A DNA stretch of 64,000 nt from Perkinsus chesapeaki ATCC PRA-425 (Eukaryota; Protista; Perkinsozoa): the NCBI GenBank assembly GCA_013115145.1, contig JAAPAO010000137.1:1942-65941 (forward strand), in the 5' to 3' direction. This document shows, piece by piece, positions 3,603 through 44,800 of the stretch. The notes under the pieces are model-generated. The model made no database searches and was not told the origin of the DNA. It was given only the letters and a program-made list of their open reading frames with translations. The stretch's first letter is position 1; every line of letters begins with the position of its first letter. The position numbers and the translations under genes are program-made.

Positions 3603-5334
3603 TCACTTCTTCGATTCTGAAAACATACGCTTAGCCGAAACCGTCCTCGGAAAATATCTTACCTTCACCCGCGGCTTCAGGAGCAGCGTGCTCTCCAGTA
3701 GCGGCTGGTGGTAGAATTTGATCCTGAATTAACAAAATTATGTCCAATAAAATATTTTGTTGTTCAGTGAAAATGGATCAAGTATTAACCGCCTTTAAAT
3801 CGGCTTAAGTAGATAACCGTAGCTTTGGGTGATTCAATGATAAAAGATGAAAAATGACTCGTATGAAAAACGTTTCAAATTCGACCCGAATCTGGTAAGA
3901 ATGCTGGACTGGTCACGGCGGTGAGTCACAGTAGGGGAGTAAAACTTGAATCAAAGATCTACTAACACTAACCTCGACGTTACAAGGGACCAGTTGCCAT
4001 TGGACTTACCGGCAGCGCGCTAGCAAGAGCGGCAGCATCAGCTGGCTCTGTACTTGGGGTCAACGAGAAGGTATAGCTGCGGGCATTGCGGTAACTGTAG
4101 AGGAAAAGTCGGTATGAAAATAGTAGTGAATTCTGTTTACGTTGAACCATCCTGCATTGAGCCCATGTGCTCTTTGTATTGGACCACAGTAGAGAGATTG
4201 AGACCGAGGATCTCACGGAACTTCTCACATATTCTGAAAAAATATCATCAACAAATCGCTGATGCCGGCGGTGACCTCGCATACACAAGCGGTGGCCTTT
4301 CGATGGTCCCGCGAGGAATAGAAATGTAAGAATACAGCGGATGCGGTTTATACGGAAAATGACATATTATTATGATGATACATTTCTGCAATAGAAAAAT
4401 AAAAACTCACTTTAGTCGGCAGCATCAGAAGTGTAATAAAGTTGTTATTACCTAAACCTGACTTGGGGATTGGTGGCATTACTGTAGTTCCAGATAGATA
4501 TGATATCATCCTTATATCGAGTAGAGAGGACACAGCCAACGACGTCCGGTACTTCGAATAGTTCACCTGGAATAATCAACTAACTCATACGGAGAAGGAT
4601 TAGTCTTAATTATCACCCTTCACAAGCGACTAAGTTCGATGGAGTATCTCCTGCCACAGCAGGTAAACGGGGTTGCGCAACGGTAAAGGAATATAACTTA
4701 TAAAAATATACCGATATAGAATATTGCACTATAATAAAGAATATGGCTTAAAATATGGGGTACTGTTCAACATAATGATACGAATTGAAGGCCCCTATGA
4801 AAATCCTTGAAGGCCCATCTTACCAATGCATGCCATAACAAGGGTCTCCCAAAGTTGGCCAAGATGATTCCTGGCAGTCTTCTTCTTGATTCTGAGAATC
4901 CAACAGCCTCCATCGGGGAACTCCTCCCACATCGGCTTGTATCCCCTAAAATTCAAAGTAATTGGCGGAGAGAGCGGTATGAGGTTACTTTCGGAATAGA
5001 TGGACATTGACATTTGGTGGTAGCTCATTAGGACGAACACAGTATCTGAAGAGAAATATCTTAGGTTAAAGCGTGCAGGATACGCAGGAGCTTACGCATA
5101 ATGTCTATAGAAGCCCTCAACGGTATTGAAAGTACCGGCCTGTTTCAAACCCTCAACATAAGCATCAGACTCACGACGATCTCCCGACTTGCGGTCGAAC
5201 CTAAAACATATCTTTTTGAGCTACGAAAGTCATGCTTCAACCTACCAGAAAGTCCAGGCGGTCTCGAGAGGATGCTCGTTTGAAGGATATTCTCCTTCCT
5301 TAACTCTGGCTTCTTCGGGATGTAAAGCGTCCAT
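3603..5334 (-). CDS. eIF4E: Eukaryotic translation initiation factor 4E family protein (multi-exon)
   Basis: HPLETAWTFWFDRK..DAYVEGLKQAGTFNTVEGFYRHY..HLFRKGYKPMWEEFPDGGCWILR..LWETLVMACIG..VVGCVLSTRYKDDIISIWN. The last two small exons are less certain. Confidence 0.9.
5057..5083 (-). other. Dispersed stem-loop element, copy A (eIF4E intron 5046-5095)
   Basis: Minus strand reads GTATCCTGCACGCTTTAACCTAAGATA. Confidence 0.8.
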
Positions 5335-5355
5335 TATAAATAAAAGAACTTCGAT

Positions 5356-5411
5356 GCGACACAAAAACTGTCCCCCGCCAGACGCGACACAAAAACTGTC
5401 CCCCGCCAGAC
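5356..5411. repeat. Perfect 28-bp tandem duplication just upstream of the eIF4E start
   Basis: GCGACACAAAAACTGTCCCCCGCCAGAC x2. Confidence 0.95.
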
Positions 5412-5478
5412 GCCAACCAACTCTATCCACCGTTCGATTGAAACGACGGGTGTTTTAACAAAGTCAAATTTGGTATCT

Positions 5479-8224
5479 TTAATGAGCTCCTGGGAATCCA
5501 CCACCGGGCATCGCTCCGCCTACTTTTGACATCAATTTCTGTAGAATTGGACCGACTTCAGGATCGCTCATGTACCTGATATAGAGGGATGAAAAGCGAT
5601 GAGAATAATATGAATAATAGTCATATATTAAGAACCAATAACAACACAAGATAAACAGTAAATTTCATAGCAGTTAAAAAGTTACTTCACACTTAACGTA
5701 GTAGTAAAAGTTTAAAAAAAGAACTACAAGTTTAAAATTAAACGGCAAAATGGAGAAATCCTGGATCAATGGAAATTGCTTTAGCACACGTTACTGAGAA
5801 ATAGCACTATAATTCATCCGTGCATGCTCCTCTGTTTAAACCAGAAGAGAAAGCTTGGGATCATTCTCGCAAAATTTCAGACCAATTTTGCAGAATATAT
5901 TTTCTCCCAGGAAAATAAGGGTAATCTTGCGGGACCCTTTTCTTCATGAGGTATGGGTAATTCAAGCTTCAGAAGCCCAACACATATCTCAAGACGTCCC
6001 AAAAACGAACACGTACAAAAAATCCACTTCAAAAACTATATGACACAACCCTCCAGAAGACTAGGCCCTTGTCTGCGCCGAAAATTTACGAAAAATTTCG
6101 TATTTTTTCTGTCGTTTCCAAACTTACTTCATAGCGTTTGCAGGATTTTGCATCATCTCCTGCATGGCCGCCATTACCTTCGGATTGCTGAATGCTGCTT
6201 GGAGATCTGGATCACTCATATGGGGCATGCCTCCTGAAGGGATCGAAATGACCAATGGGAAATAACGAGGCGCGTGAAGTGTAAATGAGAGAGGGGATAT
6301 AAAGTGATAAAGACCTGCAGCTGTGATGATATGAACAACAATTTCGATCTCATATACATAACTATTAGGACACCACAAGAGAGGTGCTAGTAACCAGCAG
6401 GTAGATAAGGATAACCCCGGATTTAACCTAAGGTAGATAAGGATAGTTACCAAGAGTCCTGGTATTATTCACATATATGCTGTATTTATATTAGGATATC
6501 GAGGACAAAGGGTTAAGTTGTTAAGTGAAGAAAAGCTACACAATTGATGTTATTAGTAAGTTTATATTTACAGAAATAGTGCATACCACGAATTTGTTAA
6601 TATAAAATATTTAGTGTCAATAAGTGACTACTACTACTGTTCATCTTTCTCCAAGTAATAGCCCCATAACCCCCACACATCGATACCCACCTGGCATTCC
6701 TCCTGGGAAGCCGCCCGGCATAGAGGAGCTAGATGACTGGGGATGATGCTCTTCGTCGGCCTCCTTTTGAGCTTCATAAGCCTTTTGGGCGGCTGCTCTG
6801 AAAAAAGACGACTTCATTCACTGGCTGGAGGCTCGCAAAACTGGGATAAAAACCGAAAATTTTACAGAAAAAACCGAAAAATTTCTGAAAATTTCTTCCA
6901 CAAGGATTTACCGGCGCTTTTTAATCTCCCTCTCCTTTCTCAGCTTGTTATTCTCATCAAGCTGGTTCTGATACTCCCGTCGCATTTGCGATATCTTATC
7001 CCACTTCTCGTCCACGTATCTGATCAAAAATATCTTACTTTCCACAAAAATATTCTCGAACTCACTTGTGAACCTCCTCAGTGGCTTCGTCAAAATCGAT
7101 GTTCTGAGCAGCGGCGAGATCAGAGTGAGCTTGCTCCCATCTGAAAGAAAGATTCTTTCGAGGTCAACTTTCAGCCTCCCCTACCTCTGCAGCTTCCTGT
7201 TTGCGATTCCCCGAATTCTGTAAGCTCGACCACTATCAGGGTTAAGCTTCCTAAAGATACGCAAGTGCGCACTACAAAGATTTTTACCCTACTTACAGTG
7301 CAGCGTCGGCATCACTAATAGCAGCAAGTGGCCTCTTCAATTTGAGAAGTACTGTGGCTCTTCGAGCGAACAACAATGCGGTAGCGCCGCCCATATCAAT
7401 GGCTTCTGAGTATCTAATAAAAATGGAAAAATGATATCGTGGGAAAAACCCGAATGAGACCATTAAGAAAGAAATAAAGATATTTTTACTTGTCGAGTGC
7501 CTTGTGGAGATCACCATCTTCAAGCGCTTCAGTGGCCTCCTGCTTTAGGCCATTTTGCTTGTCCATTTCATCATCACGCAGCTCCTAAAGACAATCGGAT
7601 ATACCCGAAACTCCTTAAGGGATTGCTGGCGGGTGGAATGCGATATCATGCCATAAAACTCGAATGAGAGCTCTTGAAAGTGTACTGAACAAGACGACTG
7701 CTGCTCACCACCTTGTCCTCGGGCCCAGTAGAAGGAACAGCCTCAGATTCTGGCTCCAGCTTTTCAGGGTCGGAAGGATCATTGAAGATCGATTCATCGG
7801 GCTTCGGGGGGTCCTGGAATGACAATGGTCAATTTGCACGCATCTACATATGTTACCACAATAGGCTCCTCTTCTTCCTCTTGAGGAGTTTCCTTGGGGG
7901 AAGACTCTCCATGGGTTTCATGAGTACGAGGCATCTAAAGGATATCTTAAGTTGAAGCGTGCAAGATACTCAAAAGGTCAGTAGACCGCTCATATCCCTA
8001 CCCGTTGCTCCTCTTCTTCTTCCTCTGCAGATGAAGTATCCTCTGTCTTTGGTGGTAGCGTTGCTCCGAGGCTCTCTAAGTAAGACCTGCGAACTTATTC
8101 CATCTCACTCGGACATTTTTCGCTTTTACTTGAAAAATCCGAGCTCCGGGCGATACAGCATCTCGGGGTTCGCCTTAACGGTGTCGATGAACCCTTTAAG
8201 TTGATTAATTTTAGTTGTATCCAT
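5479..8224 (-). CDS. ST13: Hsc70-interacting protein (Hip/ST13-like), multi-exon
   Basis: N-terminal MDTTKINQLKGFIDTVKANPEMLYRPELGFFKSYLESLG; TPR LLFARRATVLLKLKRPLAAISDADAAL..DLAAAQNIDFDE; GGFPGGMP; STI1 domain SDPDLQAAFSNPKVMAAMQEMMQNPANAMKYMSDPEV. Confidence 0.9.
7943..7969 (-). other. Dispersed stem-loop element, copy B (Hip intron 7935-8001)
   Basis: Minus strand reads GTATCTTGCACGCTTCAACTTAAGATA. Confidence 0.8.
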
Positions 8225-10179
8225 TCTTATAAAAACAAACCAACTGAGCTATAAGGAATCTTCTAGGTCTATGTAGTGCAAGCTTCAACCTTGGATACCA
8301 TATGCTTTCACCACCGGCGCTCTGAACCCTCTGTAGTAGAGGTCTAGAAATAAAAGGTAACGCGATGAAGGAACACTATCTTCCCTCCTTTTACTCTACA
8401 ACGAGTTGCCCACTTCACGCTAAAACGAATATGCGTAATTTCTGATGGAAGTTCCGCAAAACCGTTCACTACAGAGAGACCCTGTACAATTAAGCATAGT
8501 CTACTCAAATAAAGTTGCAAAAGCCAATGAAAATCACAAAAAATACGACACAAGGTTTGTACAGGTTAACGCTTAGCCGAGTTCGACGGTTATTGGTGGG
8601 TAAAACCGCTCATGAGGTATTCCTAAAACGGAATAATTTCCCCGCTTGTATAATCAGCGCACTTGCTTTACAGTATTTCAGACATGCTACTGGTTCTACT
8701 ATTTACGATCGAGGTACTCTTCTTGAGCTCTGTTAGCTTACAAAGATATCTCAGGCGTATCGAGGAGATCTTACGGAGGCCCCGTATGATAAGATTTGTG
8801 GTAGAGAGTCTATGAAAGTAAGATTCTTGGGAGGTTGATATGTCCCTAAAGCATTATGTGGGGCATTCGAGTTACGTAATCTCTTTATACAATCTACATT
8901 ACTTTATTGCGTTGAAATTGGGGCAAGCGTTATTCAGCGCTTGAAGCAACCGACATCTCATCAAAAAATAGTCCGATACTATCTCTGACTTAAGCTCGAG
9001 GGTCTATGGTGAACATAAGTCAGCAATGGGCATTGCTTTATCAGGTAGATTGGCAATTCCTCGACTTATCTGTCTCTGCCCACGTTGATGGTTCATCATG
9101 TTGTACGGTTAACATTAATGATTCTCCTACTACTGCAGAGGGATGCTGCGGAAGATGTCTCAAATCTGAAGGTGAGCAATAGTTGCTCGGTTGTCGAAAA
9201 CTCTATTTTTATTCATTATATAAAACTGCGTTCTGTGGGTAACTTACGTCGTGTAACTCAGTGGTCGGGTTACTAATAGTTATTAACTGAAGCTGATGTC
9301 TTCGGTAGTGGACCCTCAAATGGTCCTCCATCAAGCAGGTTCGGGTTGATGGCGGAAGGTGCAAAAATAACGGAGATTTTCTGGGAATTTTTCCTGCTCG
9401 TCACCGTACGTGTGGTGGCGCATGATTAACGTGATTCTGCACTATATAGCTCACAACAAATGTGCGGTGGACTGGCCGACTCCGAATCAACGCCCCGCAT
9501 AATATTGAAATGATTTGCGACTCGTGGGTGAAGTTTCAGCCACGATTTGAGACAGTTTGAGGTGAGCCTCCGAGAACTTCATCTACTGCTGAAACTACAG
9601 CATTCGTGGATCAGCGAGCTTGATGAAATTGAGCACAGCTTCAGCACCATTCGGAGCTCCTAAACCACTGCCAGACGTGAATACTTTACATTTGATTTTT
9701 GCACAATATTGCAGTAATGCTCGTCTGACGGATGATGATGTTTCCGTAAGCGAATGAGTCGATGACTTGCTTAATCATAGGCGGACATGGGCACGCATGA
9801 GACTATCACAATATAAGTTTTACTTCGAAGTTAAAATAGGTTCAAATTTACGACAAAAACTGTTTGTCATAGCAACACCGTCATCGAGATGCGGTTTCAG
9901 ATTGCAACGGGTGGGTATGGCAGCCATCAAAGGGGTCATGCTGGATTGTAAGGGGATCGGGGAAAGTATGGTATGGATATAATGCAACTACAGAAGATAC
10001 TGGAGTAGTTATGGTCCCAACACCAGACAGAATCGCAGGTAGGGGAAGAGAGATTCTTGCGCGCCAAGAAATCTTGGCCATTTACCAGTGATTTTTTCGT
10101 ATCTTTCGATCTAGTCAGATGCATGCAGCAAGCTTTGATTCCTTCGTCAGGATTCGCCACGGCAACTTCGATGCCGGTA

Positions 10180-13100
10180 TTACTGGAAGGAGTATCCATA
10201 ATTGATGTTCTTAATTACCAGCAGCCAAACGGTCTTGGTGTAATCGATTACGTGATCGATTTGCTACCAAAAGCTATTGTCAGGTGATTCTCGGAGTTGG
10301 CAGAGGCGAATTTGTGATGAAACTGTTGAGTGATTGGGCGAACACAGCAGGTAGGGGGAGGGGGGTAATAGTCAAGGAGATAGACCTGCATTATATAAAT
10401 GGTGTAATAGTCAAGGAGATAGACCTGCATTATATAAATGGTGTAATAGTCAAGGAGATAGACCTGCATTATATAAATGGGGTAATAGTCAAGGAGATAG
10501 ACCTGCATTATATAAATGGTGTAATAGTCAAGGAGATAGACCTGCATTATATAAATNNNNNNNNNNNNNNNNNNNNNNNNNNNNNNNNNNNNNNNNNNNN
10601 NNNNNNNNNNNNNNNNNNNNNNNNNNNNNNNNNNNNNNNNNNNNNNNNNNNNNNTAGTCAAGGAGATAGACCTGCATTATATAAATGGTGTAATAGTCAA
10701 GGAGATAGACCTGCATTATATAAATGGTGTAATAGTCAAGGAGATAGACCTGCATTATATAAATGGGCTCGTACCTTGGATCAGATACAGTGAGTGTCTC
10801 ATCGCTTAAATTTCTACCACGTTTTCACCGTGCATTCATCATGAATAGTGAAAGTTCCAGCAGGATTGATCCGTAAACACTCTACTTGAGCGGTTCAAGC
10901 AACTTAGGGCAAACCGTTTCGAGTGGGTTGATGATGATGTTATACATTAAATTAAGCACTACTTGACTGCTGTGAAGTTACTACAGCAACATGGGATCGA
11001 TGTTATATAATACAACATGGTTCTTTTCAAGTGAGTCTGAAAATAACAGTAGCTACTTTAATGGTAGCTACTAAACTAACGAAGTAGGTAGGTCTAGCAA
11101 GCGACCAAGTACTTAATGAACCTAGTTAACGCACGTATTCGGCCAGCTGGCGAGGGCCAGACGAATCGTCGGGCGGTGCAGTATATTGCAGAAACCTGAA
11201 AGTTCCAGCGGCAGCTGCTCGCACGCTACTACTGAGTTGCTGGCTTCACCTCGACCATGTTTAACGTTTGGATCCCTGAATATCCTAACATAACCTCCTT
11301 CGCCCCAGACAGTTCCCCAACTATTTCTAAGCTTCCAGTAACTAATGTAGCATAGAAGCAAGAAATACAGTTATCCAACTAGAGCTTATTCCACATGGCT
11401 GCTCACCTCACGCCGTTTTCCGTCCCATATCCAACCAAGAGCATAGTGTGATTTGGATTCCCATCACATTTGAAACCTACAACGCTTAGTCGACGATGAC
11501 TGTGAGGATGTTCCTGCTGCTTCTCACCTTGCAGAATGCCACCGCCGTACGATTGCCATTCATCTGGCTCAACATTGATATCTACAGATATTGGACCCAC
11601 TTGCAGTTGGGCAAAAAGTACATCAAGCTGAGATTGCCGTATTACAACGGAATGCCTCTCATCTATGCAGTCTTTCTGCCATAGTTTCGCATAATGAAGA
11701 TAACTCAGCTGTACGGCATACCTTCAAGCACTGCTTAGTCACGACGGTTATGACCGCCTTGCATTTTCCTTCTACTTCGGTGTAGGGGTACAGTTGGTCG
11801 GGAACGATCCCCTTATTTTGTACGTAGTCAAAGACGCCAAAAATCCAGCCACCGTTACATCCCCTGAGAGTCATTAGTGCGGCGGAGACAACCGCCCAGT
11901 GTTGGCATGCAGAAACTCACTCGGTTCTGTATGCTCGGCCGCAATCGATGACCTGCTGCACCGAGAATTGCGCTAAGGTCCCAGTCTGGATTTTAAAGGC
12001 TCCCTCTAGTGCACCTGAGTAGTAACGTTGTAAGGCAGACATTTGATAATGTTACTCTTCTGAAAGGGGAGATTATTACCTAAAGCTGATAGTGCGTAGC
12101 AGCTAACACAGTTCCCTTGGTGAATAGGTGGGTTAACTGCTCCCTCTGCAACCCAGTCAAGGGATGCCGGAGCTTTCAGATGCCTCGGTCCTGGGATTGT
12201 TTGCGACGTGATTTGTCTGTCTTCGGTCGGGTAAGCTGGCGCTCATTTCACTGCCATGAGAATCTCAACGTGATAAGATTCTGTCACCCGAGGGGTCGGA
12301 ATCGGGCGGACTGCATGTGTTGACGGTCATGAACTCGTCCTTGGTCATGGCAGTGAACTCGTTCACTGCTAGCCAATAGGTGAGATCTGGAATCATAATA
12401 ATGATAATGATTAGGATGATAGTTTAACTAACGGTGCTATCTAAGCACGATTAACCTAATTAGGTTACAGCTTTATCTTCCGCATTCATTCCACATTGTC
12501 TTCATCCGAAACTGTTTATATCATTTCTGAGGCCTACTTTTCTTGTTAGTTTCCTCAATGAATGCCAAGTTCCTCTTGAACTCGCTAAACTTCCGTTCGT
12601 CCTCCTTAAGGTTCAAGGACCGTACCGAGTACCTACAGTCGGAAAGGCTCAAGTATGGGCTAATTCGTCATGGTTTCACCTATCCTTAAACTCTGCATAC
12701 TTGTGACGAATAGGCAGGAGCGAAGCAGCCTCTTCCATACCTACAGTCCCACTTGCGGTAAATGAGGATAGAGCTACAATGAATACTAGTTTGGTTGCGG
12801 TCATCGAAGTCAACTGCGGAGTGCCCGAAACCTACAAGAGCTCAGACCATTGCTCCCGCCGATAGTCACCCTTGGACTTGCTTTCCGACTTGTTCTCATA
12901 CACCCTCGAAGCTAGTTTAGCTTTCTGAACCTCTTCCCGGCCTTTTTTCACCGCACGCAGTGCACGTCGTGTTCTCGCTCCAGGCTGAACGGCTTCCTTC
13001 ACGAATATGCGAAACCGACGATCCTTCCTCTTCACTTAGTCGTGTCGCTCTAAGCGACTCCCCCATCACTCCTTCAAGACGGTTTGGAGGTTAAGTTATT

Positions 13101-18200: not shown

Positions 18201-18322
18201 CTCCCAGCGCTGCCGCCGAAGACGCTAATAAAAGCACCAACTGCTAGCTCGGACGCTACAAGTACCTAACTGTTATAGGCAGCCCTTGCTCTAGCTCGAG
18301 TGCTAGAACCTGTCCGCATGCT

Positions 18323-19390: not shown

Positions 19391-19494
19391 GGACGCCACG
19401 GCGATGGCGCGACTTGGTCGTGTGTGGTCGATTGTGGAACCGGATGAACTTGGTGCAGTAAATGTGTATCATAGAGTCATAACGGAGACAACTG

Positions 19495-22007: not shown

Positions 22008-22131
22008 AATAATACCGATCTTCGTCTTACCCGGACACTATAATGCAGAGAATAACCCTCCTCAGCTAGTCAACAGTGAACCACCGTGGTCAAGTCAACC
22101 ACGGCATCATCGCATCGCTTTCTATGATATC

Positions 22132-23178
22132 GTGGCAGTTAAAAATTTCCAAGTGATGGGCTCACCTTATTCCAAGCTCGCTCCCGTTTCAGCTGCGGCT
22201 GTCCTAGCTCCAACGGTTTTCGCTGCTGCTCCGCCTGGTCAGAAGCTCCTTAGCCCGTCGCTGTCTACCGATGGCACGTACATCAGCAATGCACCCAGCG
22301 ACCTCGACCTCGAACACCTAGGCATCGATTTGTTACCTAATGATGGTCAACACTTGAATGTGAAACTTACATTGTTTACTCCTGGTATGAGGTTGACGAC
22401 CGTATCTCTGGAGATGGAACCATTCGATACGGCCATTACAGAGTCGGACAGGAAGCTGAAATCGGAGGGATGCGTCAAACCGAAAGGCTCCTATAACTGG
22501 CACCTTCAGTGGGATGGGTATCCTCCGGTTGGCCCTGGAACTATCGCTTTGTGCCCTGGAATTGGTGATGAGGGTGTAAGAACAGTCCGCATCATTCTGA
22601 ACAGAGCAGCATATGGTACACAAGGTGTTATGATCTCGCAGCTGCACAAGTCGGGAAAGGAGGATGCACCGAGAATTGACAAACCTCGAGGACTTCGAAC
22701 AGGAGAATACGTCTACTCATCCTCCGGTGGTAACGCCTTGTCTGAAATCAGGATTACCGTACCGGATGGGAGATTTTCTGAAAGAAGGAGTGGGAACATT
22801 ACTTTCACAGTTGTTGAGAATGGCCAAGAGTACAGCACAGCGGTGTGGTTCGCAAGTGTTCGGCAGATTTCATCTCTCAGAAAGAGCTCATACATGCTTG
22901 ACACATGCTTCGCTTTTCACAATCGGGGAGATGGACGCATTAATGAGATAAAAATGAAAATATATCCAGGGAAGGACACCCGTCATTCTATGATGTTGTG
23001 TGTTTCTGCCGATCAAAAAGCTTTACTGCTCTACCCTGATCAAAAAAGGTCAGATCCCAAGGATACAGTCTTCCGCTTAGTCGAAAAGCAGCCTTTGGGC
23101 CCCACTCAGGGGAGTAAGCGCGGAAGTCACCCTGATGATAAAGAAGAAGAAAACATTAAGAAAGTACGAAAGGACTGA
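22132..23178 (+). CDS. Intronless hypothetical protein (348 aa), hydrophobic N-terminus and basic C-terminal tail
   Basis: Long uninterrupted ORF; LAPVSAAAVLAPTVFAAAP near the N-terminus; ends KRGSHPDDKEEENIKKVRKD. Confidence 0.8.
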   Translation: MAVKNFQVMGSPYSKLAPVSAAAVLAPTVFAAAPPGQKLLSPSLSTDGTYISNAPSDLDLEHLGIDLLPNDGQHLNVKLTLFTPGMRLTTVSLEMEPFDTAITESDRKLKSEGCVKPKGSYNWHLQWDGYPPVGPGTIALCPGIGDEGVRTVRIILNRAAYGTQGVMISQLHKSGKEDAPRIDKPRGLRTGEYVYSSSGGNALSEIRITVPDGRFSERRSGNITFTVVENGQEYSTAVWFASVRQISSLRKSSYMLDTCFAFHNRGDGRINEIKMKIYPGKDTRHSMMLCVSADQKALLLYPDQKRSDPKDTVFRLVEKQPLGPTQGSKRGSHPDDKEEENIKKVRKD

Positions 23179-26537: not shown

Positions 26538-26805
26538 TGTCGTGCGCGTGCGTGCAGCTTCAATTTCGGGGCGCGCGCTTTTTACAGATCGCAGGCTGAG
26601 AATTGGGTTCTGGCAGTGGGGATAGGGGTTTGCTCGGACTATCAACCTTGAAAGATTCAAAGAAGGTTGATTCGCGAATAACTCTATGTAAGATGCTACG
26701 GAAAAGTTAGTTATGCGCTGAACTACTCACCAGACGGAATTTATAGTGAAACTCTCGACGTGCGAAATATGTCTTATTTAGTTTATAGTGTCTAGTAAAC
26801 CTCAG

Positions 26806-28104
26806 ATGTCCTCCTCCACTCCCCAAAAGCTCCTATTCGAGCCCGCAGCTGCCCGTTTGCAGAACGGTTTGAAACTCGTCTTCGGCTCTGATCACGCCGG
26901 CATCGACCTCAAGAACGAGATGATCGACGTAGGCATTCGCTGTCTAATTTTCGTCTTGTATTTGATCCGCCTTTCAGTTTGTGAAGAACACCTTGAAGGC
27001 TCCCGAGGGCAGCATCACGGATGTTGGCACTTACACTCACGACTCGGTAGGCTTTCTGGAACAGTCTGGAATATAGGCATGTCGTCGTCTACGTCTTGAT
27101 GAGGCGACGAAATTCTAGTAGAGTCTTTTGCACTTACAGCAATAGTAAGTGTATCCATTATAGCGATTCTGCAATTGGCAAGCCGAACTGAGAAAAGCCG
27201 AAGGAGACGTCGACGTCGACTTTCTGATGGATCCGATAGTCTTTGTTATGATCAAGTGAGATGCATCTCTTGTCTGATGTAGGTTGATTATCCAGATTTC
27301 GCGGAGAAGACCTGCAAGACTCTTCTGAGCACATCGGACGATACTTCGAGTAGGAATCTGGGAGCTTGGTATCTCTAGGTTGAGCGTGCAGGATATACGA
27401 GAGGTCAACTGGAGGTTATTTTCTTCTTTTATTTCAGAGGCTCTAGGCGTTGTTATTTGCGGATCCGGTCTTGGTATTTCCATGTCGGCCAACAAGTGCA
27501 AAGGCATTAGGTAGTCCACGCTCCACTATATCAACCAAAAATACGGTTTTTCCATCAGATGCGCCCTGTGCTCTAGCAACTACGATGCTCGTTATAGCCG
27601 CCTTCACAACAACGCTAATGTAGCAAGTCGTTCCTCTCGAGCATGCTTTCGTGGTATTTGTTGATCAGGTTCTCGCCATGGGTGGCCGTACAACTGGTGT
27701 TGAAGTCGCTCGGGAAATACTGGCAACGTGAGCTTCATTCTGGAATTCCGAATCGATTCTCGAATTCAGTGGCTCTTCTGCTGACTCTCCTCCCCATGTG
27801 TGTTTCAAACACTTTGTGCTTATCGTTATAATATGTATTCATCCGAGTGCCGCAGAGGGGCTAGACTCCGGCCAGTGTAACCCTCAGCATTCGATAGAAA
27901 AAAGAGCTTTCCCTGTAGGGCCATTTGATAGTTGCTACTGGAATGTCTCTTACCATCTTGAAGTCTTGGAACGTGTATCGACTCTGTTCAATTTTCGTGT
28001 TTTCATTGCTTGTTATTTCTCTCAGTTACATCAATACCGATTTCGAGGGCGGTCGCCATCAGAAGCGAATTGATAAGATGATGGCTCTCGAACAGAAGGA
28101 CTAA
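26806..28104 (+). CDS. rpiB: Ribose-5-phosphate isomerase B, copy 1 (7 exons)
   Basis: GSDHAGIDLK; DVGT..DSVDYPDFA; GVVICGSGLGISMSANKCKGIRCALC; RLHNNANVLAMGGR; FEGGRHQKRIDKM. Confidence 0.95.
27368..27398 (-). other. Dispersed stem-loop element, copy C (RpiB1 intron 27350-27437, antisense to host)
   Basis: Plus strand reads GGTATCTCTAGGTTGAGCGTGCAGGATATAC. Confidence 0.8.
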
Positions 28105-28630
28105 TTTTCTCTACTGTTAAACCGTTGTGACATTGCCGTGTCCCAAATATTTCTAATAAGCACTACTGCGTGTTGCGCGGTAGTCAGTGGAATATGCACC
28201 GGATAAAATACGCGAACGGTCAAGGTGCTTCTGGCGAACGAATCGAGTATAACTATGCGCGAGTTCGATTCCTTGTATTCCCATTAGTATGATGAGACAT
28301 TAGTCTTGCGCATACATAGTCAAAGAACCCCTACAGTTTAATCAAGTTTATAACCGCAAGTCTAACTAGCCGAATTCAGTTGGCGTGGGAAGCTCGAACG
28401 TACATGCTTCGGGGCTAGTTAACGCATCGGGCAACACAAAGACTGTCCCGTTACCGCGCAGCTACATGTTTCTAGCCACTACCAGTGTCTGGTCATAGCA
28501 CGATTATTGTAGCGTTCTGACACGGGCCTCCTGTAGGGGTGCGCGTAGAGTAAGGTATTGGCTATGTTGCTGTGGATTCACAGATATCAATGTACTCGTT
28601 GGTCAGTTGTTATTGTTATTACCTTTTATC

Positions 28631-29391
28631 ATGTCCTCTAGTGCACCAGAGAAACTTCTGTTCGAGCCTGCTGCTGCCCGGCTCGCGAATGGCCTCAAAC
28701 TTGTGTTCTGTTCCGACCACGCTGGTATCGATCTCAAGAACGAAATGATTGATGTAACTTTCGTGGAGGTTCGAATGAATGATAAGTATTTGTGTCTTAG
28801 TTCGCGAAGACGAGCCTGAAGGCACCTGAAGATTGTATTACTGATGTTGGCTGTTTCACCCACGACTCTGTAAGTTCATCTCTGTAGGCTTAATGCACTT
28901 CTCTGGATTGAGCTTCTGTAACATGCTCTGCCAATACACTTTGTCGTTTACGGATTTTCCGCTCAGGTTGACTATCCTGACTTCGCCGAGAAACTCGGAC
29001 ACAAAGTGATGGAAGTAGACGACACAACAAGTACACTGAACGTTAAATTGCTATGTTTCATCATTATCTTCAGAGTGCTTGGGTGTTGCCATCTGCGGTA
29101 GCGGTCTCGGCATGTCTATCGCCGCCAACAAGGTGAAGGGTATTCGTTGTGGTCTTTGCCATAGTAACTACGATGCCCGCTACTTGAGAATGCACAACAA
29201 TGGCAATGTAAGACTTGATAAATTCTCTGTTTCCAGCGGCGAGTCGTCAGGTCCTCGCGATGGGCGGCAGAACAACTGGTGTTGAAATTTCCAAGGAGAT
29301 TCTCGCGACTTTCATAAACACTGATTACTGCGGTGGCCGCCATCAGAGGCGCATCGACAAGATATCCGCTATCGAGGATCGTCGTGATTAG
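28631..29391 (+). CDS. rpiB: Ribose-5-phosphate isomerase B, copy 2 (5 exons)
   Basis: CSDHAGIDLK; VDYPDFA; GVAICGSGLGMSIAANKVKGIRCGLC; RMHNNGNVLAMGGR; GGRHQRRIDKI. Confidence 0.95.
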
Positions 29392-29729
29392 AGAGACTCG
29401 ATCCTTTTCGAACATCTAACAGACTGTGTTAGTATGGTTTCACTTAGCAGTTCTTGCTTAACTGTACAGAAAAGTTGTGTTGTGAAGTTTGACAGGGAAG
29501 TCAAGTCCCTGCGATTCGTCGGGGTTCTATGCGGTGACGTCTTGACCGATGACATCGTTAACTGCGAACGACGTTACGGTTACGGTTCACAGCGTACGGT
29601 AAGGCGATATAGGAGACCTCCATAGCATCGACTGTCAACTGAAGTCATGCTGCACGAAACAGACATTACATTGCAGCGAACACAAAAGAAGACCATGAGG
29701 GAACTGCTGATCATAAAAAGTCGAAAACT

Positions 29730-30972: not shown

Positions 30973-31039
30973 TCCCAATCGAGACTGCAGCCCATCAGAA
31001 ACTCCATCGAACTCAACAACTGAACACTGGATACAAAAT

Positions 31040-35742: not shown

Positions 35743-36278
35743 TTAATCAACCTGAGCCATAGCGACGTCCTTATCGGTATAAGGCTTCTTTCCAGAGTCC
35801 TTAGAGCGGTTCTTGCGCTCAAGGAGGGCCTTGCGATCCTTGTCCATCTTCAGCTTAGTGATGACAACCTTGGAAGGGTGGACACCGACATTGGCGTGGG
35901 AGCCGTTGACCTACAACAGAAAATATCTCAATCGATTACAAAGATATTTTTGAGGTTGTTACCTTGTCGCGGGTAAGACGCTCGATGTGGATAACGAACT
36001 TCTTACGGTAGCAAGCGGTGACCTTGCCCTCGCGATCGCTGTAGTGACCACGGACAACCATGACCTCGTCATCCTTGCGGATAGGAACGGACCTGAAATG
36101 AAGCAACAATGGCTAGAGGTGCCAGAAAAATGTCGGTAAACTACCTGACGTTGTACTTGGCTCTGAGCTCCTTGGAGAGAGGGGCGGACATGATGATCCT
36201 CCTCTGGTCCGAAGGGGCGGTGAAGTGGGCCTTACGGCTCTTACGACGAGAAGATGACACCGCGGGCGAGAACTTCAT
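35743..36278 (-). CDS. RPL26: 60S ribosomal protein L26 (uL24), 3 exons
   Basis: [93 protein letters not shown]. Confidence 0.97.
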
Positions 36279-36336
36279 GGTAAACAACTACGGCTACTAG
36301 GGGATATTAAAATGCTACCCAAACTTCACCTATTAT

Positions 36337-36365
36337 GTATCTTGCACGCTCAACCTCTAAGATAC
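36337..36365 (+). other. Dispersed stem-loop element, copy D (59 bp upstream of the RPL26 ATG)
   Basis: GTATCTT-GCACGCTCAACCTCT-AAGATAC, perfect 7-bp stem. Confidence 0.85.
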
Positions 36366-36970
36366 CTCAAACCCATAATATAACACTGCCAATAGCCTCT
36401 CATAGTCTCCATATAAGCCGCGACGACCTCACCAAAATGCACCGGCCGAAAATGGCAAGGTGAGAGCGCACCACAGGCAAGCTGGGGCAATATCGATCAC
36501 GTGATCGATTTCTCTGCGCACCGTCGACGGGCCCGTCTGCGGTGCCCCATGATGAGAAAAAGGAGAGATTTAGATATAGATAAGGCCTTAATGTGCCGCA
36601 TAGGCCTTGAATGATGACACTTTGATCAGCCGTAGTTAACATTCAACTTAGAAATGTCTATATCTAAACATTGATCTTACTTGGAGCTTCGAGTAGCCCA
36701 GAAGTAAGTATCCCATGATAATATATTGTCATGTAGAACTGTTATACAATAATAAATAGTATGTATTATAACACCTCATAAGAGTAGCTATTCCTTACCA
36801 ACCTAACCATATCCTCGTAGTCGTTCGATCATCATTTAACGTCATGGAAGTCCTGTTTACTACTCCAGTGGGTCTCTGTGAGGTATGCATGTGAAAGCGC
36901 TGAGGGATTCTGAGTTGAGTTCAAGTGTCATTGTAAGGGGGTTACTATCGCCGGCAAGCTGACCTATTTC

Positions 36971-36998
36971 GTATCTTGCACGCTCAACCTCAAGATAC
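36971..36998 (+). other. Dispersed stem-loop element, copy E (12 bp upstream of the METTL ATG)
   Basis: GTATCTTG-CACGCTCAACCT-CAAGATAC, perfect 8-bp stem. Confidence 0.85.
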
Positions 36999-37010
36999 CC
37001 CTGTTCCTCA

Positions 37011-37907
37011 ATGTCCTCCCTACCCCCTCTCCCCACCGTTAAACCCTATAATCCCACCAATGATGACCTCTTCGAGGCCGATCAGCTTATCTCCTCCGCC
37101 GCTGAAGTTCCCCAATTTTGGGCACAGAAATACGAAAAAGATGCCGTCAAAAATTGGGACCTATTTTACAAGCGTAACAAAGCTAACTTCTTCAAGGACA
37201 GACACTACCTCGTCACAGAGTTCGGAGAGGTGGCCAGAAGCGACGCCTTCATCGACTCTGAGGATGCCGGCCATCTAGTAGAGATTGGCTGCGGTGTTGG
37301 TAACGCAATCGTTCCCCTTGCAGAGGCATGCCCGAAGCTTACGGTCCTGGCAACAGACTGCAGTAGTGTTGCGATCGACTTGCTCGATGAGAGGCTCAGG
37401 AGTGAGGATCCTAAGGTGGCCGAGAGAGTATCTACGAGAGTCGTTGATGCGACCAGCTCGAGTTTTCCGCCTGAGGACATGGAGGGCACTGCCAACTTTG
37501 TGTTGCTGTTGTTTTGTATGAGCGCCATCTCCGAGGCACATTATGGTAGGGTTATTGAAGGATGCAAAAGGATACTGAAGCCAGGCGGAATTGTTCTATT
37601 TAGAGACTATGGAAAATACGATTTGGCACAGCTGCGGTTTTCTAAGGACAAGGGCCGTGCGGCAACGGCGTCGAGATTGCCGGGCGAGGAGGACTTCTAT
37701 GTGCGTCAGGACGGCACCCGGGCAAAGTTCTTCACGGAAGAGTCTCTTGCGGATATGTGGGAAAGTTCAGGAGGGTTTGAGAGGGTGGAGCTGATCACTC
37801 ATCGACGGTGCGTGATTAATAGGAAACAAGGCAAGGAAATGAAGCGGGTGTGGATACAGGCAAAGTGGAAGAAGCCAGAAGAGGAGGAAGATATTACTGT
37901 AATTTAG
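37011..37907 (+). CDS. tRNA m3C methyltransferase (METTL2/6, Trm140-like), intronless
   Basis: KYEKDAVKNWDLFYKRNKANFFKDRHYL..EFGE; LVEIGCGVGN; LKPGGIVLFRDYGKYDLAQLRF; YVRQDGTRAKFF; RVWIQAKW. Confidence 0.95.
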   Translation: MSSLPPLPTVKPYNPTNDDLFEADQLISSAAEVPQFWAQKYEKDAVKNWDLFYKRNKANFFKDRHYLVTEFGEVARSDAFIDSEDAGHLVEIGCGVGNAIVPLAEACPKLTVLATDCSSVAIDLLDERLRSEDPKVAERVSTRVVDATSSSFPPEDMEGTANFVLLLFCMSAISEAHYGRVIEGCKRILKPGGIVLFRDYGKYDLAQLRFSKDKGRAATASRLPGEEDFYVRQDGTRAKFFTEESLADMWESSGGFERVELITHRRCVINRKQGKEMKRVWIQAKWKKPEEEEDITVI

Positions 37908-38827
37908 TTTCTGAAGGCCTTTGGAGGGAGTTATGTCAATAGGGGGAGGAGATACGTTATAGGCGTATGTTACTGGTGTCTTGGTGGGGTTTGGGAGGCA
38001 ATGTTTCCACTCTGCGATGCGGTAGGTCCTCGTAGGGCTTTGGGCTCTAGGTAGTATTAATCTAGACGATATATTTCCGTTTAGGATCAATTACAAATAA
38101 TGATTCCCGTCAAACTTTTCCTGTGTTGTGTCTCCTCGGCAGGGAGGTCCTTCAAGATTGTTCACTGTTTTGTAAGAGTGTGTGTGATAATTTTATTAAG
38201 TTACGTACCACCTATCGTCTCCCAGGCTTGGTGAAGTGCATGTCAGACCATATAAGATATATTATTATTACTACCTTAATAATATATTTATTAAAAACAG
38301 TATAATATTATCATACTGTGCTTTCACGCCCTTCTTGTATATTGGATACTCTATGCTTACAGTAAGCAACAAGAAGGATGATGATGGTGATGATGATGAC
38401 ATATCGGCAAGAGGACGACGTAGACGTGCCGAGTTGCAGTGTTGAACTAGTCTAATGGAAGGTTAACATTTATGTGGGAAAATCCCAGTAAAATTTCCAA
38501 GGGTCCATTTTCATATAGGAAGTAATGGTGAACACTGAATGAATGCAGTGTATGTTGTTGAAAGATATCTTCCCATTGTAGAACTCATTGGCGCTAGATG
38601 AACGTTCGTCTATCACCACTGCTCATTTCTACGATCGTTTCGATGCTGGTTCATATTATCTCATGACAAGCGCGTGGATATCGCATGCCCCCAGAGAGAG
38701 CGCATTCCCGGAAGATGCTGTAGTTTTGAGAAAACGGTGCCGAATATTTAACATTTATTGCTGAATGTGTGCTTGCTGAATACGTCTTCTTAATCATCAT
38801 CGCTCCACTGTTAGTTCATATTATATC

Positions 38828-41800
38828 ATGACAACCTCAACCTCGAGGAGATTGACACCAGCAAAGAGAGCATCATCGGTCAGGGAGGAGGAGATAAGAT
38901 GGTCGCCTGGGAAAAGGAAGAAGCTTGATACTGCAAAGCCTACCTCGACTCTGGGAACTGAGCGGGAGGCTCAGGTGTACCTTAAAAGCAGTCAGACGTG
39001 TCGAACAGCTACAACGTTGAGCTCGACGCCGAGGGTGGTGAGGCGAGCGGCGACTTCGAGAGCGAGGACGAGGAGTAATGGTAGTCAGGCGGATGAGGAG
39101 ACGGTGGAGAGGAATGAAAGGGAATTGATGGGCAATTTCAGGCCGTGTGCCACGCAGGCCATGGACGCGTTTGATAGGGAGGAAGAATTAGAGCTGCTGG
39201 AGGCGGCGGAGCTGATAGAAGCGGGGGAGAGCGGTCTGAGTACGGACTGGAGCTGCTGCACGCATGCGCAGGAGAATCTTATGGGAATTGGTAATGATGC
39301 GAGGTCACCACCGATGTCGCCGGAGAGAGCAGCGGTGAAACCGTCGGGGAGAAAGTTGATACCGGGCACGCAAGTTGATGATGATTGGAGTGATATCGAT
39401 TTTGATGATTTAGATGCGGCTTGTACACAGGTAGGGAATCTTAGGTTGAAGCGGGTAGATTCTTGAGAGGTTGATTGATTTCGATGTGTTGGTTATATAG
39501 GACTGAATCAGTACTACTGATACATCTTACAGACTTTCTGTCACCAGTTTAGATTTCTCGTTCGCCCACTATCTATAGATTATTGATAAAGAAAAAATGA
39601 AGTATGTCATAGAACCTGTACCTGTCTGTCTGTCTGCCTCAACGTCATCGCCGTCTCTCTTGCTCCCCAACGATGACGCTTTGCTCTATATCTTGAGGGC
39701 CTCTGTCCGCTGCAATACGCTGATGGACGTTCCTCCTCGGATTCAACAATCACGTCGTCTAGGGATGACGCTATTATCGTATCGGCTTGTCGGTTGTGTC
39801 TATGCGATAGTCCTTAGTTGAATAGGTTGAATGCGCGGTGGCTGCACTGAAGCCATCTCCGCCTGAGGGTGATGACGATGACGAGTTCGGGTCGTTAGCA
39901 TCGGAGGACCTGCTGGCTGCTATGGATGAGATTGAGGCGGCGGCAAATAAGGCAGCTGGTGGGGAGAAGGAGGAGGGCGTTGCTGGAAGGCTCATCGATA
40001 CTGAAGCGTCATAGGGATCTTCCACAATCTTCATCAGAATTTTTTTGCCTCACCAACGAACATAGAGGGCGAAAGGCCACCCTCCTCACCGGCAGATATT
40101 CGGGACTTTCGAGGAAGTGCCCCAAAATTGCCTTTGTTATTTGGGCTCTGAAGGATGTAGTTGTACTATAGCATGTACAGTAGGTGGCGATGACGTTGGT
40201 GATAGCAACTGCAGAAAAATACGGGAAAAGATTCCGCCGCCGGGAATTGAACCCGGGTCTCCTGCGTGACAGGCAGGAATACTCACCACTATACTACAGC
40301 GGAACTGATCTCAAAAGGTGTCAAAAAGCATCCCTACCTCAAACTTAGGTTTCTACAACGAGCCGCCATCGGGTAAGTGGTCTAAGTATGTTGAGAGCCG
40401 AATAAGCGGAGAAAAGGCAGAAGTGGACGCCGTGGCTAAAGAGGTAATCCACTGGAGTGCCGGGCACTGACCAGAAGGGGAAATAAAGATTAAGTGTAGA
40501 TATTATTATAAATATTTATATTCGGACCGATATTGATTTACCATATACATTGGGAGCAATCATTAGTACCCTAGGAAAAGGTCCTTGTGAGGCTAGACGG
40601 GCTTCTGCGTCAGATTAAAATATTCCAAGTCGACGAGTCCATTTCCTCGCCTTGGTCAGGTTCGTCTTACTCTCGAAGATGGTAGAGTTGTGGTCTTGAA
40701 GGGGCCTTGGTATTGGTTTTGGCAAGACAACTGCGATAAGCTGGTCCATCCTGGCGACCCAGTGAATCTCGTTTTCGCGGAAGCGAAGGACTTCGATGCC
40801 CCTGTGGTATATTGCGGTGACACTGGAAATCTGTTGGTGTTTCATCCATCAATTTTGCTCTCCGGCACAACAGTGTCGAACACTCTACCGTGCCAGAGGA
40901 AAACGCTCCTCCAGCATCTTCTGAGCGATGTGGGGCGAGGCGATCAAAGTAACGTTTACGCGAGCGTCGGTAACGGTGTACATTCCCTACTGCAAAATGC
41001 GCTAATGTTTGGTAGTAGAGTCGATGAAAAGTTCACGCGCCACATAATTGATAGCTATCGACTGGACGCCTGGTTCAGCGGGTTCAGCGATACGAGCGTG
41101 CTGGAGCGACACATGAGGGAGAGAATTCCGCAAATCGATCAGTGGCTCGCCGATGTGATGCCGATGAAGTTCTCGAGGATGCTGGCAGCCGAACAAAATG
41201 TTAACTCCTACAAGTTTGGGCTGAAGGGCAAGATCGACGCTGTGATGGAAATGAACAAACCGGGCCGACCACTGGCCTGTTTGGAAATAAAAACTGGGAA
41301 ACCTTGGCACACCCACGTTGGTCAAGTAACTCTGTATCATCTCCTAATGGTTGACTTATACGGCGAGGAGGCCGTTAGAGATGGTCTATTGGAGATAGGA
41401 TACTTCAGCGGGAATCGACCGCAGAGAGGAGGAGGACAGCAGAGCGGAGGGGGGCAGGCGAGAGCGGAGGTTAATGAGGTAATGACTCTCGGGTTAATGA
41501 AGAGCATTCGGATGAGTGAGTGAGATCTTATTACTTGTAACCATTAATACCAGCATGAGGGAGGCTAGCAGGGAGGACTTGTGTTTATCACAGCGGTGAT
41601 ATCTATGGTTACTTACTTTGTTTGATTGTTACTTCGAGCACGACGGGTAAACTGGCAGAGAGGCCCTCTGCGAGTGATGGAGTGATTTCATTATTTAGTG
41701 AATTATCCATCTGAATTAGTACTGGAAGCTACGGTCCTTTATGACACTCAGTCGTTTGCTACTGCTACATATCTTTGGGCCAGTCTGACGATTGGGCCCC

Positions 41801-44800
41801 TGACGGAAATGATGGCTCGCCACTCGTCATCATTGTGTTATAGGTGCAAGCATTCCCTAATGAGATTGATAACCTTATCTGCGTCCGTAATGCCTTAGCC
41901 CTGCACATAGCACGGAAAGGTCTACCTCCTACAATAGGAGCTAAAAGGGAGTGCCAAAGGTGGGGGAGGAGGAGGAGGAGGGAAAATTAAGTGAAATAGC
42001 TTTAGTTGCTGAGGTGCACCTTGACGGGATTGTCGCCAGTGGGATCCTACAGGGCGCCCCAGGAGCTCTCAAGAGCTTTCAAACGCCCCGCGTGTCGCAG
42101 AAATATTCGCCCTCCTGAAAAACGCACATTTTTCTGGGACGCCCTGCAGATCCCATATAGTGGTGAGAGTTCCAGCGTTAGTTCTATGGAAAAATTTTGG
42201 TTTGCGTTGTTAAGTGACCGCGGATGATTTCCGTGACCTAAAGGTGATAGGAGGCACATATTGCGACTTGGTAGATCGGTGGTGATTATACGGTTTCATT
42301 ATCCTGGTGTCTCTGGGGTATCTTTCCCTCGATTGAAATGCACGCTCAACCTCTCAGATGCCAACTCGCTCCTCATTGTGTTGCAGCCCATAGTATCCTA
42401 GAAAAAAAGTAAGATTATTTCGTGGCGCGCGGTCATGCTCTTTTCAGAAGTGTGAATGACTTTGGATGTGAACCACCTATTACTATTGATGATGTTCCTC
42501 CTCGACTTGGTGAATACATTCGGAAGTGGTGGAGATGGCTCAGGCGGGAAGAGAGAGCTGGTAAATTCTTGGTCGCAGAAATTTCACGTTTTTGTAAAAA
42601 CGTTACACTGAGTTGAAAACGTTTACAGTTTTTCTATCAGAAGTTACATTCTCCTTTAGGTGAACGAGCCCCCATTATCGTTCTCGAGCATGCACGAGTA
42701 AGCGACATATCTGTGGTTGAAGGTAAGCAGCTATGGACAATCGAAGGAGATCCTAGCGGAGCACAGGAGATTGCCGTTGGTGATGAGCTACATGTAGGTC
42801 ATCACTCGTACATTTTTATCCCACATGTGCCTGGCTCGGGCCAAGTTTGTGACGCACCTTACTTCTCGAGTGCCTTTACTTTTGTATTAAGGCAATACAC
42901 TATCGTGGATTAGCAAATTCGTTTAAAGCGAATTAATTTCTAAATACTTTTTCAAAAAATTTTGGAAATTTTTTCGGTGTTGTATTTCTTATGTCGATGT
43001 CCTGGACCTTCCGTCTGGGGATATCTTCGAACCTTATGCAGCTGCTCAGTCTCGTGAACTAGAAGGAGCTTCATCAAATGGAAGAATCAATTTTCGTAAA
43101 TTTCCATTTTGGAAATTTTTCCACTGATTTTTTGTAAATAATATTTCGGGTATGGAGGTTGCAATATTTGCCATCAACAGTAGTATCATTTTGTGATCAG
43201 AGCATAATCGATCACATGATCGATTTCAGGTATCTTATCAACAATACGGACCTCGTAACATAGCCATGGGAGATGTAACCGAGATATCCGCCTTCGGCTC
43301 GCGTACCAAAGTTTTTCTATCAATGCGAGATGACGGCACACCAGAAGTCACTCCGGGCACACTCGACGTCGAAGATTTTCAGCAAACCGTCACTGCGCCG
43401 AATAAAAGCGTTTACATGACCGCCACCAGACTGTTCAAACTTTCGAAAGTTGATTGGGGCGGAGTCGGTCAGACGAAGCGAAATCGATCGCTCCTATTGG
43501 AGCTCGGCCATGCCACCAGTGGATGGGCCTTCATTTTATCCGGCGCGATGAAACCGAAGCTGCCGAGGCTCCGGCCATGTGTTGCCGTACCGGTCCCTTA
43601 TGAAATTCGGGCGGCATTCGGTACACTGAATGACGGCCAGAAGAGCGCCGTGTGTGGTGCTTTGGAGATGGCCCGAGGGGACATTGGCGATCGATGGATA
43701 CTGCCGGTGTGTGGCTATCCTGGCACTGGCAAGTCCAGTATGTTGGGAGTGTTACTTCTGGGGTTGATGTATGGTACCAGTTGTCGAGTGCTTTTGGTTA
43801 GTCATACTCATACAGCTGTTGATAATTTATTATTGAAGACGAAGAAGTTGGCAGAAGAAGGAGCTTTAAAGGATTTCGAGTAAGCTGCCGCCTGGCGAAG
43901 TTGTCATCGACTACAACTTATGATGAATTATCATTTCGTAGCCCTTAATTGTTGTTGGGTGGTGGTCGTTTTCAACGCCTTCGAGCCGTCATGCGCTCAT
44001 GGCCCGCCTAATGTCGTTTTATATTCTCCGAATATAACGTTTAGCATTCTCGTAAATGATTGGCTTTGGTATAAATCACTTGTTGGTGATCACTATGTAA
44101 AACGATGAGGTGCTTTATGGAGTAACTTGTCCTTTCTAAACCTTCCGGGGCACTAAGAACAACCGGAGTTCTTCTAGTTGCCCATTTTTCACTTTGCAAT
44201 CGCCCGCGGACGTTGGCGAGATACGTCCTGGGCAAATGAGCGAACTCTCGGCTACTGAGTTTCGGCAAAAATGTTTTTGGCAGTTTCGGCATTGAATGAA
44301 ACAATTCGGCAGTTCTTCATTTGTTTATTTCCTGTATATTTCCATCTAAAACGGTTATTGTAGAGTCACTAGTTATATAGATCTACTTCAACTCCATATC
44401 GAATGATATCCAATTTGCTTTACGTTTGCTCTTGGTCAGTTTCGTGCGAGTCGGCCGGTCGTCCTCGTCTACGGTACGGCCAGAGTTAGCTAATCATTAT
44501 CCACCTGATGAGTGGCCTTCAGTTGATAGTATATCTGATTTTATGTGTACGAGGGTAAGAGTGACGACCTAATTTGCATCTTGCGCCCTTAACCTAAAGA
44601 TTCTTAGGGTGGGCGGCTTGTAGCATGTACAGCGTTATCATGCCACAATCCATTACTGTGGCCACCGAAGCCACCGAATGAGGAAGATATTTCAACACAG
44701 CCTCCAGGAAGGCCCTCCAGCCAGCCGAAAGTATCCTTCTTTGGCTTGTTTATAGTTAACCTCGAAAATATCTTTCAGGTGCTGGACCGTGGGCTACCGC

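Follow-up and report, generated by a model that had tools for sequence, protein, structure and literature searches.

The question raised by this locus is what a short, hairpin-like element is doing near exon borders, where it recurs with little change across 64,000 nucleotides (nt) of the genome of the shellfish parasite Perkinsus chesapeaki ATCC PRA-425 (contig JAAPAO010000137.1, positions 1,942 to 65,941; hereafter the window, and all copy counts and enrichments below refer to this 64-kb stretch, not to the whole genome). On balance, and with odds only a little better than even, we favor the view that the element serves Perkinsus introns and outrons as a portable cassette of branch site and acceptor, an outron being the stretch removed ahead of a leader-joined messenger RNA (mRNA), and that it has spread by insertion. 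On our best reading, the closest known kind is represented by the introner elements of the sister lineage Amoebophrya. The earlier note on this DNA had not recognized the sequence as a known element and, consistently, its core 12-mers are absent from the searchable literature.

All eight clear copies that the earlier note had listed (A to H) were found at their respective positions. In a profile search with nhmmer, copies A, B, C, D, E, and H were recovered with E-values of 5e-13 to 5e-10 and copy F with an E-value of 1.5e-6, and the profile comparison showed D and E to be almost the same sequence. Allowing at most 2 mismatches, the 14-mer core is seen 5 times in the window against an expectation of 0.46, a count matched by 0 of 100 shuffles. 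The element had been described as conserved within unalignable surroundings; the first part of this description stands, but the 5' flank is in fact conserved as well (YTRACCT-N5), so that the full unit, YTRACCT-N5-GTATCYT-GCACGCT(T)CAACCT-N0-2-AAGATAC, exceeds the earlier description and extends over ~41-46 nt, with 28 nt corresponding to the core element. The outer arms (GTATCTT and AAGATAC, 7 nt each) are inverted repeats, as proposed, with 92.7% of arm cells pairing, and copy F indeed carries one compensatory change (T-A to A-T) that preserves the pairing. The arms are not terminal, the conserved unit running past the 5' arm. One arm pair is broken in each of A, C, and H, the covariation is weak (the observed score was reached by 39 of 500 shuffles), and the predicted RNA hairpin is weak as well (-3.5 to -7 kcal/mol, z-scores of -0.1 to -3). 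Relative to transcription, A, B, D, E, G, and H are in the sense and C and F in the antisense orientation, and the end of the element closest to the exon is the one carrying AACCT and AAGATAC, in agreement with the orientations reported before.

The evidence from RNA comes from copy E, the extended unit of which (36955..37002, + strand) reads CTGACCT-ATTTC-GTATCTTGCACGCTCAACCTCAAGATAC and is supported by leader-bearing complementary DNA (cDNA) and by alignment with Perkinsus marinus. The RNA data are small 454 libraries primed with a dinoflagellate spliced-leader primer, which were compared with window positions 36300-42299. In the cDNA contigs of two samples (runs X1 and X4), the match to the window begins at 36989, with CCGTAGCCATTTTGG ahead of it. 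The 3' end of the leader, CTCAAG, equals the genomic CTCAAG at 36989-36994 and, because this hexamer is common to leader and genome, the junction is placed after the AG at 36993-36994 of copy E (CTCAAG/ATAC, the slash here and below marking a splice junction). The mRNA body runs from 36995 and reaches, 16 nt on, the ATG at 37011 of a transfer RNA (tRNA) methyltransferase gene, an intronless METTL2/6-like open reading frame (ORF; 37011-37907) with a product 80% identical to a P. marinus protein; the window's methyltransferase itself is not on record. Thus, the AG inside copy E receives the spliced leader when an upstream donor is absent, and the suggestion that the copies might be trans-splice acceptors is borne out at this copy by leader-joined cDNA at AAG/ATAC. 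Another leader junction, at AG 36628-9, shares with the primer just the AG, and the libraries therefore report true junctions.

The neighborhood of copy E is consistent with this role. A poly(A) tail follows position 36903, and the E acceptor lies 91 nt downstream; in both E and D, a branch-site-like CTGAC or TTCAC is found 32-34 nt before the acceptor, with no AG in between. The 48-nt block of copy E is 92% identical in P. marinus contig L001 (765-812 versus 36955-37002), at the same place, and this conservation begins exactly at the CTGACCT flank; the coding DNA of the two species is 73% identical, whereas the upstream flank is unalignable. The extended unit of copy D (36325..36365, + strand, a profile match) places its AAG 72 nt before the ATG at 36437, which is followed by a GTGAGA donor, and we infer from this arrangement that D, which no cDNA contig of the 454 libraries covers, may also serve as a leader acceptor. 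In the operons of C. elegans, the Ur element is an outron, or intercistronic, signal for leader trans-splicing. Copy E is reminiscent of it, being a short conserved stem-loop signal situated between the poly(A) site at 36903 and the leader acceptor at 36994 of close same-strand genes; however, the two are unrelated in sequence, the acceptor lies within the element in Perkinsus, and cis-spliced introns use the element too.

Three further sense copies reside in tiny introns. Reading frames were homology-guided and hand-checked, codon bias being weak across the window, and the genes (eIF4E, a Hip/ST13-like gene, two tandem RpiB genes, and Dna2) were identified with Pfam and homologue profiles. 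Copy A (5056-5083) lies in the 50-nt GT-AG intron 2 of eIF4E (5046..5095, - strand), with the donor 12 nt before the element and TTCAG/ 10 nt after it; the joined frame reads ...FYRHYAYCVRPNELPPNVNVHLFR, the Pfam IF4E domain is found on the flanking exons, and the sole branch-site candidate of this intron, CTTTAACCT, is inside the copy. The Hip/ST13-like intron (7935..8001, - strand, 67 nt, GT-AG), across which the frame is joined and which precedes exons encoding an STI1/HOP DP domain, contains copy B (7942-7969) with a CTGACCT flank and the acceptor CCTTTAG/ 7 nt past the element. Similarly, the 53-nt GT-AG intron of Dna2 (44555..44607, + strand) contains copy H (44576-44603) with a CGACCT flank and TTAG/ 4 nt past the element, and the joined frame matches profile positions 904-942 and 945-959 on its two sides. 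The frames at A, B, and H are continuous and homologous only with these 50-67 nt GT-AG introns, in which the element is near the 3' end and, to judge from its position, probably supplies the branch site. The proposal that the copies are themselves micro-introns of 24-25 nt read GT..AG is not supported: the frames at A, B, and H require larger introns that start upstream, and such a removal at G shifts the frame into a stop. Of the contexts assigned previously (six intronic, two upstream of starts), two call for correction: A belongs inside the 50-nt eIF4E intron, and G, instead of occupying an ordinary intron, lies within the Dna2 reading frame.

We note that ordinary introns of the window end in YTRACCT-N5-WATCTT-(Y-rich)-YAG, which is far narrower than the usual combination of branch site and pyrimidine tract. 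Examples of this generic 3' module are found at 44756..44778 on the + strand (TTAACCT-CGAAA-ATATCTT-TCAG/) and, on the - strand, at 7149-7167 (TTGACCT-CGAAA-GAATCTT-TCTTTCAG/), 8820-8838, and 26652-26670. RACCT-N5-WATCTT..YAG was found 11 times, against 1.0 or 2.5 expected in two counts, and RACCT-N0-3-AAGA 10 times, against 1.9 expected. The 5' half of the element resembles the generic module and, given that this half and RACCT-N0-3-AAGA both match the local grammar, the element consists of two tandem copies of branch-site grammar. The near-invariant linker and arms nevertheless identify it as one repeated family, not convergent signals.

In the mechanism that we propose, the element read in RNA sense would present, in order, the YTRACCT branch box, a 5-nt spacer, GTATCYT, the linker GCACGC, a second box, T(T)CAACCT, and the AAG contained in AAGATAC. 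In transcripts with no upstream donor, as at E, the AG inside the element would take the spliced leader. In A, B, and H, the inner AAG is presumably too near the second branch box, and the frames suggest that the next YAG, 4-10 nt on, is used instead. The family would spread by insertion in either orientation; sense copies in transcribed DNA would be kept as acceptors, and the antisense copies C and F would be passengers. Copy G, finally, might be excised as an intron that lacks GT-AG ends, is flanked by repeats, and is bracketed by a hairpin, or it might be retained as a 14-residue insertion.

Spread by insertion is suggested by the presence and absence of C and F at homologous introns, a comparison proposed in the earlier note. 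Copy C (27369-27396, antisense, with its flank extending to 27408) is in an 88-nt GT-AG intron of RpiB copy 1 (27350..27437, + strand; joined frame VDYPDFAEK...ALGVVICGSGLG, LacAB_rpiB), whereas the paralogous intron of RpiB copy 2 (~28.99-29.04 kb) is ~43 nt long and lacks the element. Copy F with its flank (39434..39475, - strand, a profile match) reads TCAACCT-CTCAA-GAATCT...AAGATTC and begins 5 nt past the donor CAG/GTAGG of a + strand gene. It is missing from the orthologous P. marinus intron: in the one orthologous contig, the alignment extends no further than the donor, and the intron sequences cannot be matched. The introns compared for C and F are otherwise unalignable, and a clean empty site was not seen. 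The earlier observation that no target-site duplication accompanies the element holds for the canonical copies, but copy G has a 3-nt direct repeat, CTC, and the proposal that the element is a miniature inverted-repeat transposable element (MITE) of minute size receives indirect support from the two orientations, the absences of C and F, and the location of G in a coding motif with the CTC repeat.

Copy G forms part of a 42-nt block (42314..42355, + strand) within the Dna2 reading frame, composed of GTATCTT, a 14-nt insert, and TGCACGCTCAACCT, and flanked by CTC on both sides. Read through the block, the frame gives SWC-LWGIFPSIEMHAQPL-RCQLAPHC. At this site, 9 of 9 homologues have C-x-x-C-x5-C (e.g., CSRCFSRQAC), and the conserved CxxCx5C motif is regained (SWCLRCQLAPHC; SWCLRCQLAPHCVAAHSILE) only by removing exactly 42 nt, the ends being ambiguous within the CTC repeat. 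Scored with the Dna2 hidden Markov model, the region reaches 1.4 bits spliced versus -2.4 bits unspliced. There is no canonical GT-AG solution at G: after removal of the 40-nt GT..AG stretch, the shifted frame runs into a stop, and none of the other canonical pairs resolves the frame. The ends of the exons on the two sides of the block are able to pair (z-score of -1.2, not significant alone). A protein search with the Dna2 region returned no Perkinsus Dna2. We consider that G comes close to an even chance of being a tolerated 14-residue insertion, may quite possibly, at somewhat below even odds, be a non-GT-AG intron, and is unlikely to be an assembly error.

Copy G is one of three composite variants (G at 42318, 8242-8299, and 5198-5248) in which 14-18 nt separate the arm from the core. 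Among the weak copies reported earlier, those at 8271 and 5233 thus proved real, if composite, but that at 12438 was missed by the profile. The variant at 8242..8299 (+ strand, a profile match) comprises an arm, a 14-nt insert, GCAAGCTTCAACCT, and TGGATACC; read on the - strand, it is GACCT-AG-AAGATTCC-TTATAG, with the ATG of the Hip gene 27 nt downstream. The variant at 5198..5248 (+ strand) corresponds, in reverse complement, to eIF4E intron 1 (45 nt: GT-AGGTTGAAGCA...GCTCAAAAAGATATGTTTTAG).

The introners of Amoebophrya have hairpin-forming inverted repeats near their ends and 3-5 nt direct repeats at their boundaries, many of them lack GT-AG, and some are inside canonical introns (PMC7789003). 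The Perkinsus element likewise is a short repeated intron element with inverted repeats that can bring exon ends together, and copy G combines the CTC repeats with the lack of a GT-AG solution and pairable flanks. Nevertheless, the arms measure 7 nt here against 8-20 nt in Amoebophrya, the Perkinsus copies form one family of near-invariant 28 nt with a fixed asymmetric core, and most of them are found at a leader acceptor or within GT-AG introns of the ordinary kind, non-canonical removal being a possibility suggested by sequence and reading frame. Introners of algae, dinoflagellates, and fungi are repeated elements that can enter genes, carry one splice site, recruit the other from the insertion site, and may add codons (PMC9860276). 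These known introners range from tens to hundreds of nt and as a rule constitute the entire intron, whereas the Perkinsus element, at 28-46 nt, is often a part of one and is present in antisense orientation and at a trans-splice acceptor as well. A bolder and more doubtful reading is that we are dealing with a family akin to introners, active or recently so and with its 28-46 nt shorter than any seen so far, which makes introns and leader acceptors by insertion and some members of which are removed without GT-AG by a mechanism of hairpin and direct repeats, as in Amoebophrya; if this were true, the unusual splicing mode would go back to the ancestor that perkinsids share with dinoflagellates. 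Should the cassette itself be confirmed, leader addition and the splicing of tiny introns would have a defined, portable signal in a parasite for which essentially no RNA processing signals have been described, and this would be helpful for gene models and transfection constructs. The cassette would also connect Perkinsus with Amoebophrya and dinoflagellates and their invasive intron elements and provide a very small, sequence-defined model of mobile DNA turning into introns, with a bearing on the origin of introns, and copy G would be a concrete example, in an essential gene, of what may be an intron without GT-AG.

Other explanations have to be weighed against the branch-site and acceptor cassette. 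If the element acted as DNA, the idea favored in the earlier note, a dimeric protein, be it a transcription factor, a boundary factor, or a recombinase, would recognize the GTATCTT and AAGATAC half-sites, 21 bp apart centre to centre, together with the asymmetric core, and the splice-related positions would be secondary. Such a site would accommodate the occurrence of copies in both orientations with respect to transcription (C and F being antisense), the conservation of arm sequence in A, C, and H despite broken pairing, the weakness of the RNA hairpin (-3.5 to -7 kcal/mol), and the location of D, E, and the variant at 8242-8299 just before gene starts. We regard it as unlikely, however: the AG of E is used in RNA, the flank and second box fit the genome's own branch-site grammar, the sense copies are at a fixed short distance from acceptors, and no candidate binding protein is known. 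It is also improbable that we see a purely selfish miniature mobile element (a micro-MITE or introner) with no host function, the likeness of which to splice signals aids survival in transcribed DNA. Copy E, which serves as a leader acceptor and is 92% identical at the same P. marinus spot amid unalignable non-coding DNA, speaks against this, as do the size of 28-46 nt, well below that of known MITEs, and the lack of duplications at the eight copies, even though both orientations occur, C and F are missing from homologous introns, G interrupts a coding motif and is accompanied by a direct repeat of 3 nt, and D and E are near-identical. An origin as a hAT excision scar was rejected, because the arms and core are alike at every locus and not locus-specific.

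A more remote idea is that the element docks the spliced-leader RNA, its TGACCT, GTATCT, and CAAGAT segments pairing with AGGTC, AGATAT, and ATCTTG beside the leader RNA donor; the core (CTYAACCT, similar to the 5' end of U1) would base-pair to a 5' splice site, thereby joining donor and acceptor. The complementary segments are indeed co-linear with the P. marinus L-type leader RNA, the 5' part of which was assembled from the leader sequence and a primer table (PMC3101222), and the duplex energies range from -15.5 to -24.6 kcal/mol (z-scores of -0.7 to -2.5). We consider docking very improbable: the z-scores are modest, those obtained with the S-type leader RNA being even weaker, the copies do not constitute independent tests, the leader RNA used is that of P. 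marinus and not this species' own, and most sense copies reside in cis-spliced introns. Hardly credible, in our view, is the last alternative, namely, ultra-short U12-type introns with RTATCYT as donor, CTYAAC as branch site, and AAG or AC as the 3' end. U12-type introns have the consensus /RTATCCTT, situated exactly where exon and intron meet, and TCCTTAAC, 10-15 nt ahead of the 3' splice site, to which GTATCCT or ATATCCT and CCCTTAACC of the element are similar, as are its RTATCYT and CYTTAAC motifs more generally, but the 5' motif of the element is not at an exon boundary. In A, B, and H, the branch box precedes the acceptor by 15-20 nt (CCCTTAACC 15 nt before TTAG/ in H, CTTTAAC and TTCAAC at 20 and 17 nt in A and B), and this box fits the generic RACCT motif as well. 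Moreover, the introns containing A, B, and H open at GTAAGC, GTAGGG, and GTAAGA, 12-32 nt before the element, in-frame stops bar a start at the element, GT..AG removal in G shifts the frame, and C and F are antisense. Surveys report neither minor introns nor minor small nuclear RNAs for alveolates (PMC10639083; PMC7789003), and Rfam detected no minor small nuclear RNA genes in the window, only tRNAs.

Several points weigh against the cassette that we favor. Direct RNA support exists at one copy only, E, and its junction overlaps the polymerase chain reaction primer by 6 nt (CTCAAG), which carries a small risk of mispriming. The branch sites are predictions. The ratio of 6 sense to 2 antisense copies is no significant departure from random, no target-site duplication is present at the eight canonical copies, the CTC repeats being found at G alone, and G is possibly a plain in-frame insertion or assembly error. 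Furthermore, generic splice signals leave the near-identity of all 28 positions, including the GCACGC linker, unexplained.

Additional features of the window are the following. A tRNA or B-box origin of the element was rejected: the core is without the B box GGTTCGANTCC and has G in place of the invariant C56, the five tRNA genes of the window bear no resemblance to the element, and Rfam gave no hit to it at E-values up to 10. An intact tRNA B box, GGTTCGAATC, does occur in the intron at 54540-54600 (+ strand), followed by GCGCCCTAAC-TG-AAGATCC..CTCAG, and the 3' grammar of this intron (CTAAC-TG-AAGATCC..CAG) resembles GCGCCCTTAACCT-A-AAGATTC of copy H. The two tandem RpiB genes (26800-28100 and 28600-29400, + strand) are old duplicates with ~70% DNA identity, and their same-position introns are unlike in length and content. 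The longest ORF of the window (22132-23178, + strand, 348 aa) has no Pfam match and 0 homologues among 5.8 billion proteins searched, and is possibly not a gene. The assembly gap at 10557-10654 is >1.7 kb from every copy of the element, and the apparent ORF at 10284-10793 spans it only through read-through of N.

The short leader-joined RNA at 36628-36903 has a body beginning with CCGTAG.., which resembles the leader's own start, lacks any ORF of length, and includes intron-like stretches that are unspliced; it may represent a transcript of a relic leader or mark an internal acceptor of a gene starting at ATG 36437. As for the element, an origin from a relic spliced leader was rejected, CTCAAG being present in E alone and a leader-like 21-mer being absent from the window. 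In the comparison of P. marinus L001 (4648-5265) with the window (40929-46324), the P. marinus contig apparently skips ~5 kb of Dna2 that the window has, which may reflect an assembly collapse or a real difference. Finally, a second inverted pair with similar arms and another core (AAATATCTT-TGTAATCGATTG-AGATATTT) is found at 35941-35990 on the - strand, directly after a branch-like ACAACCT.

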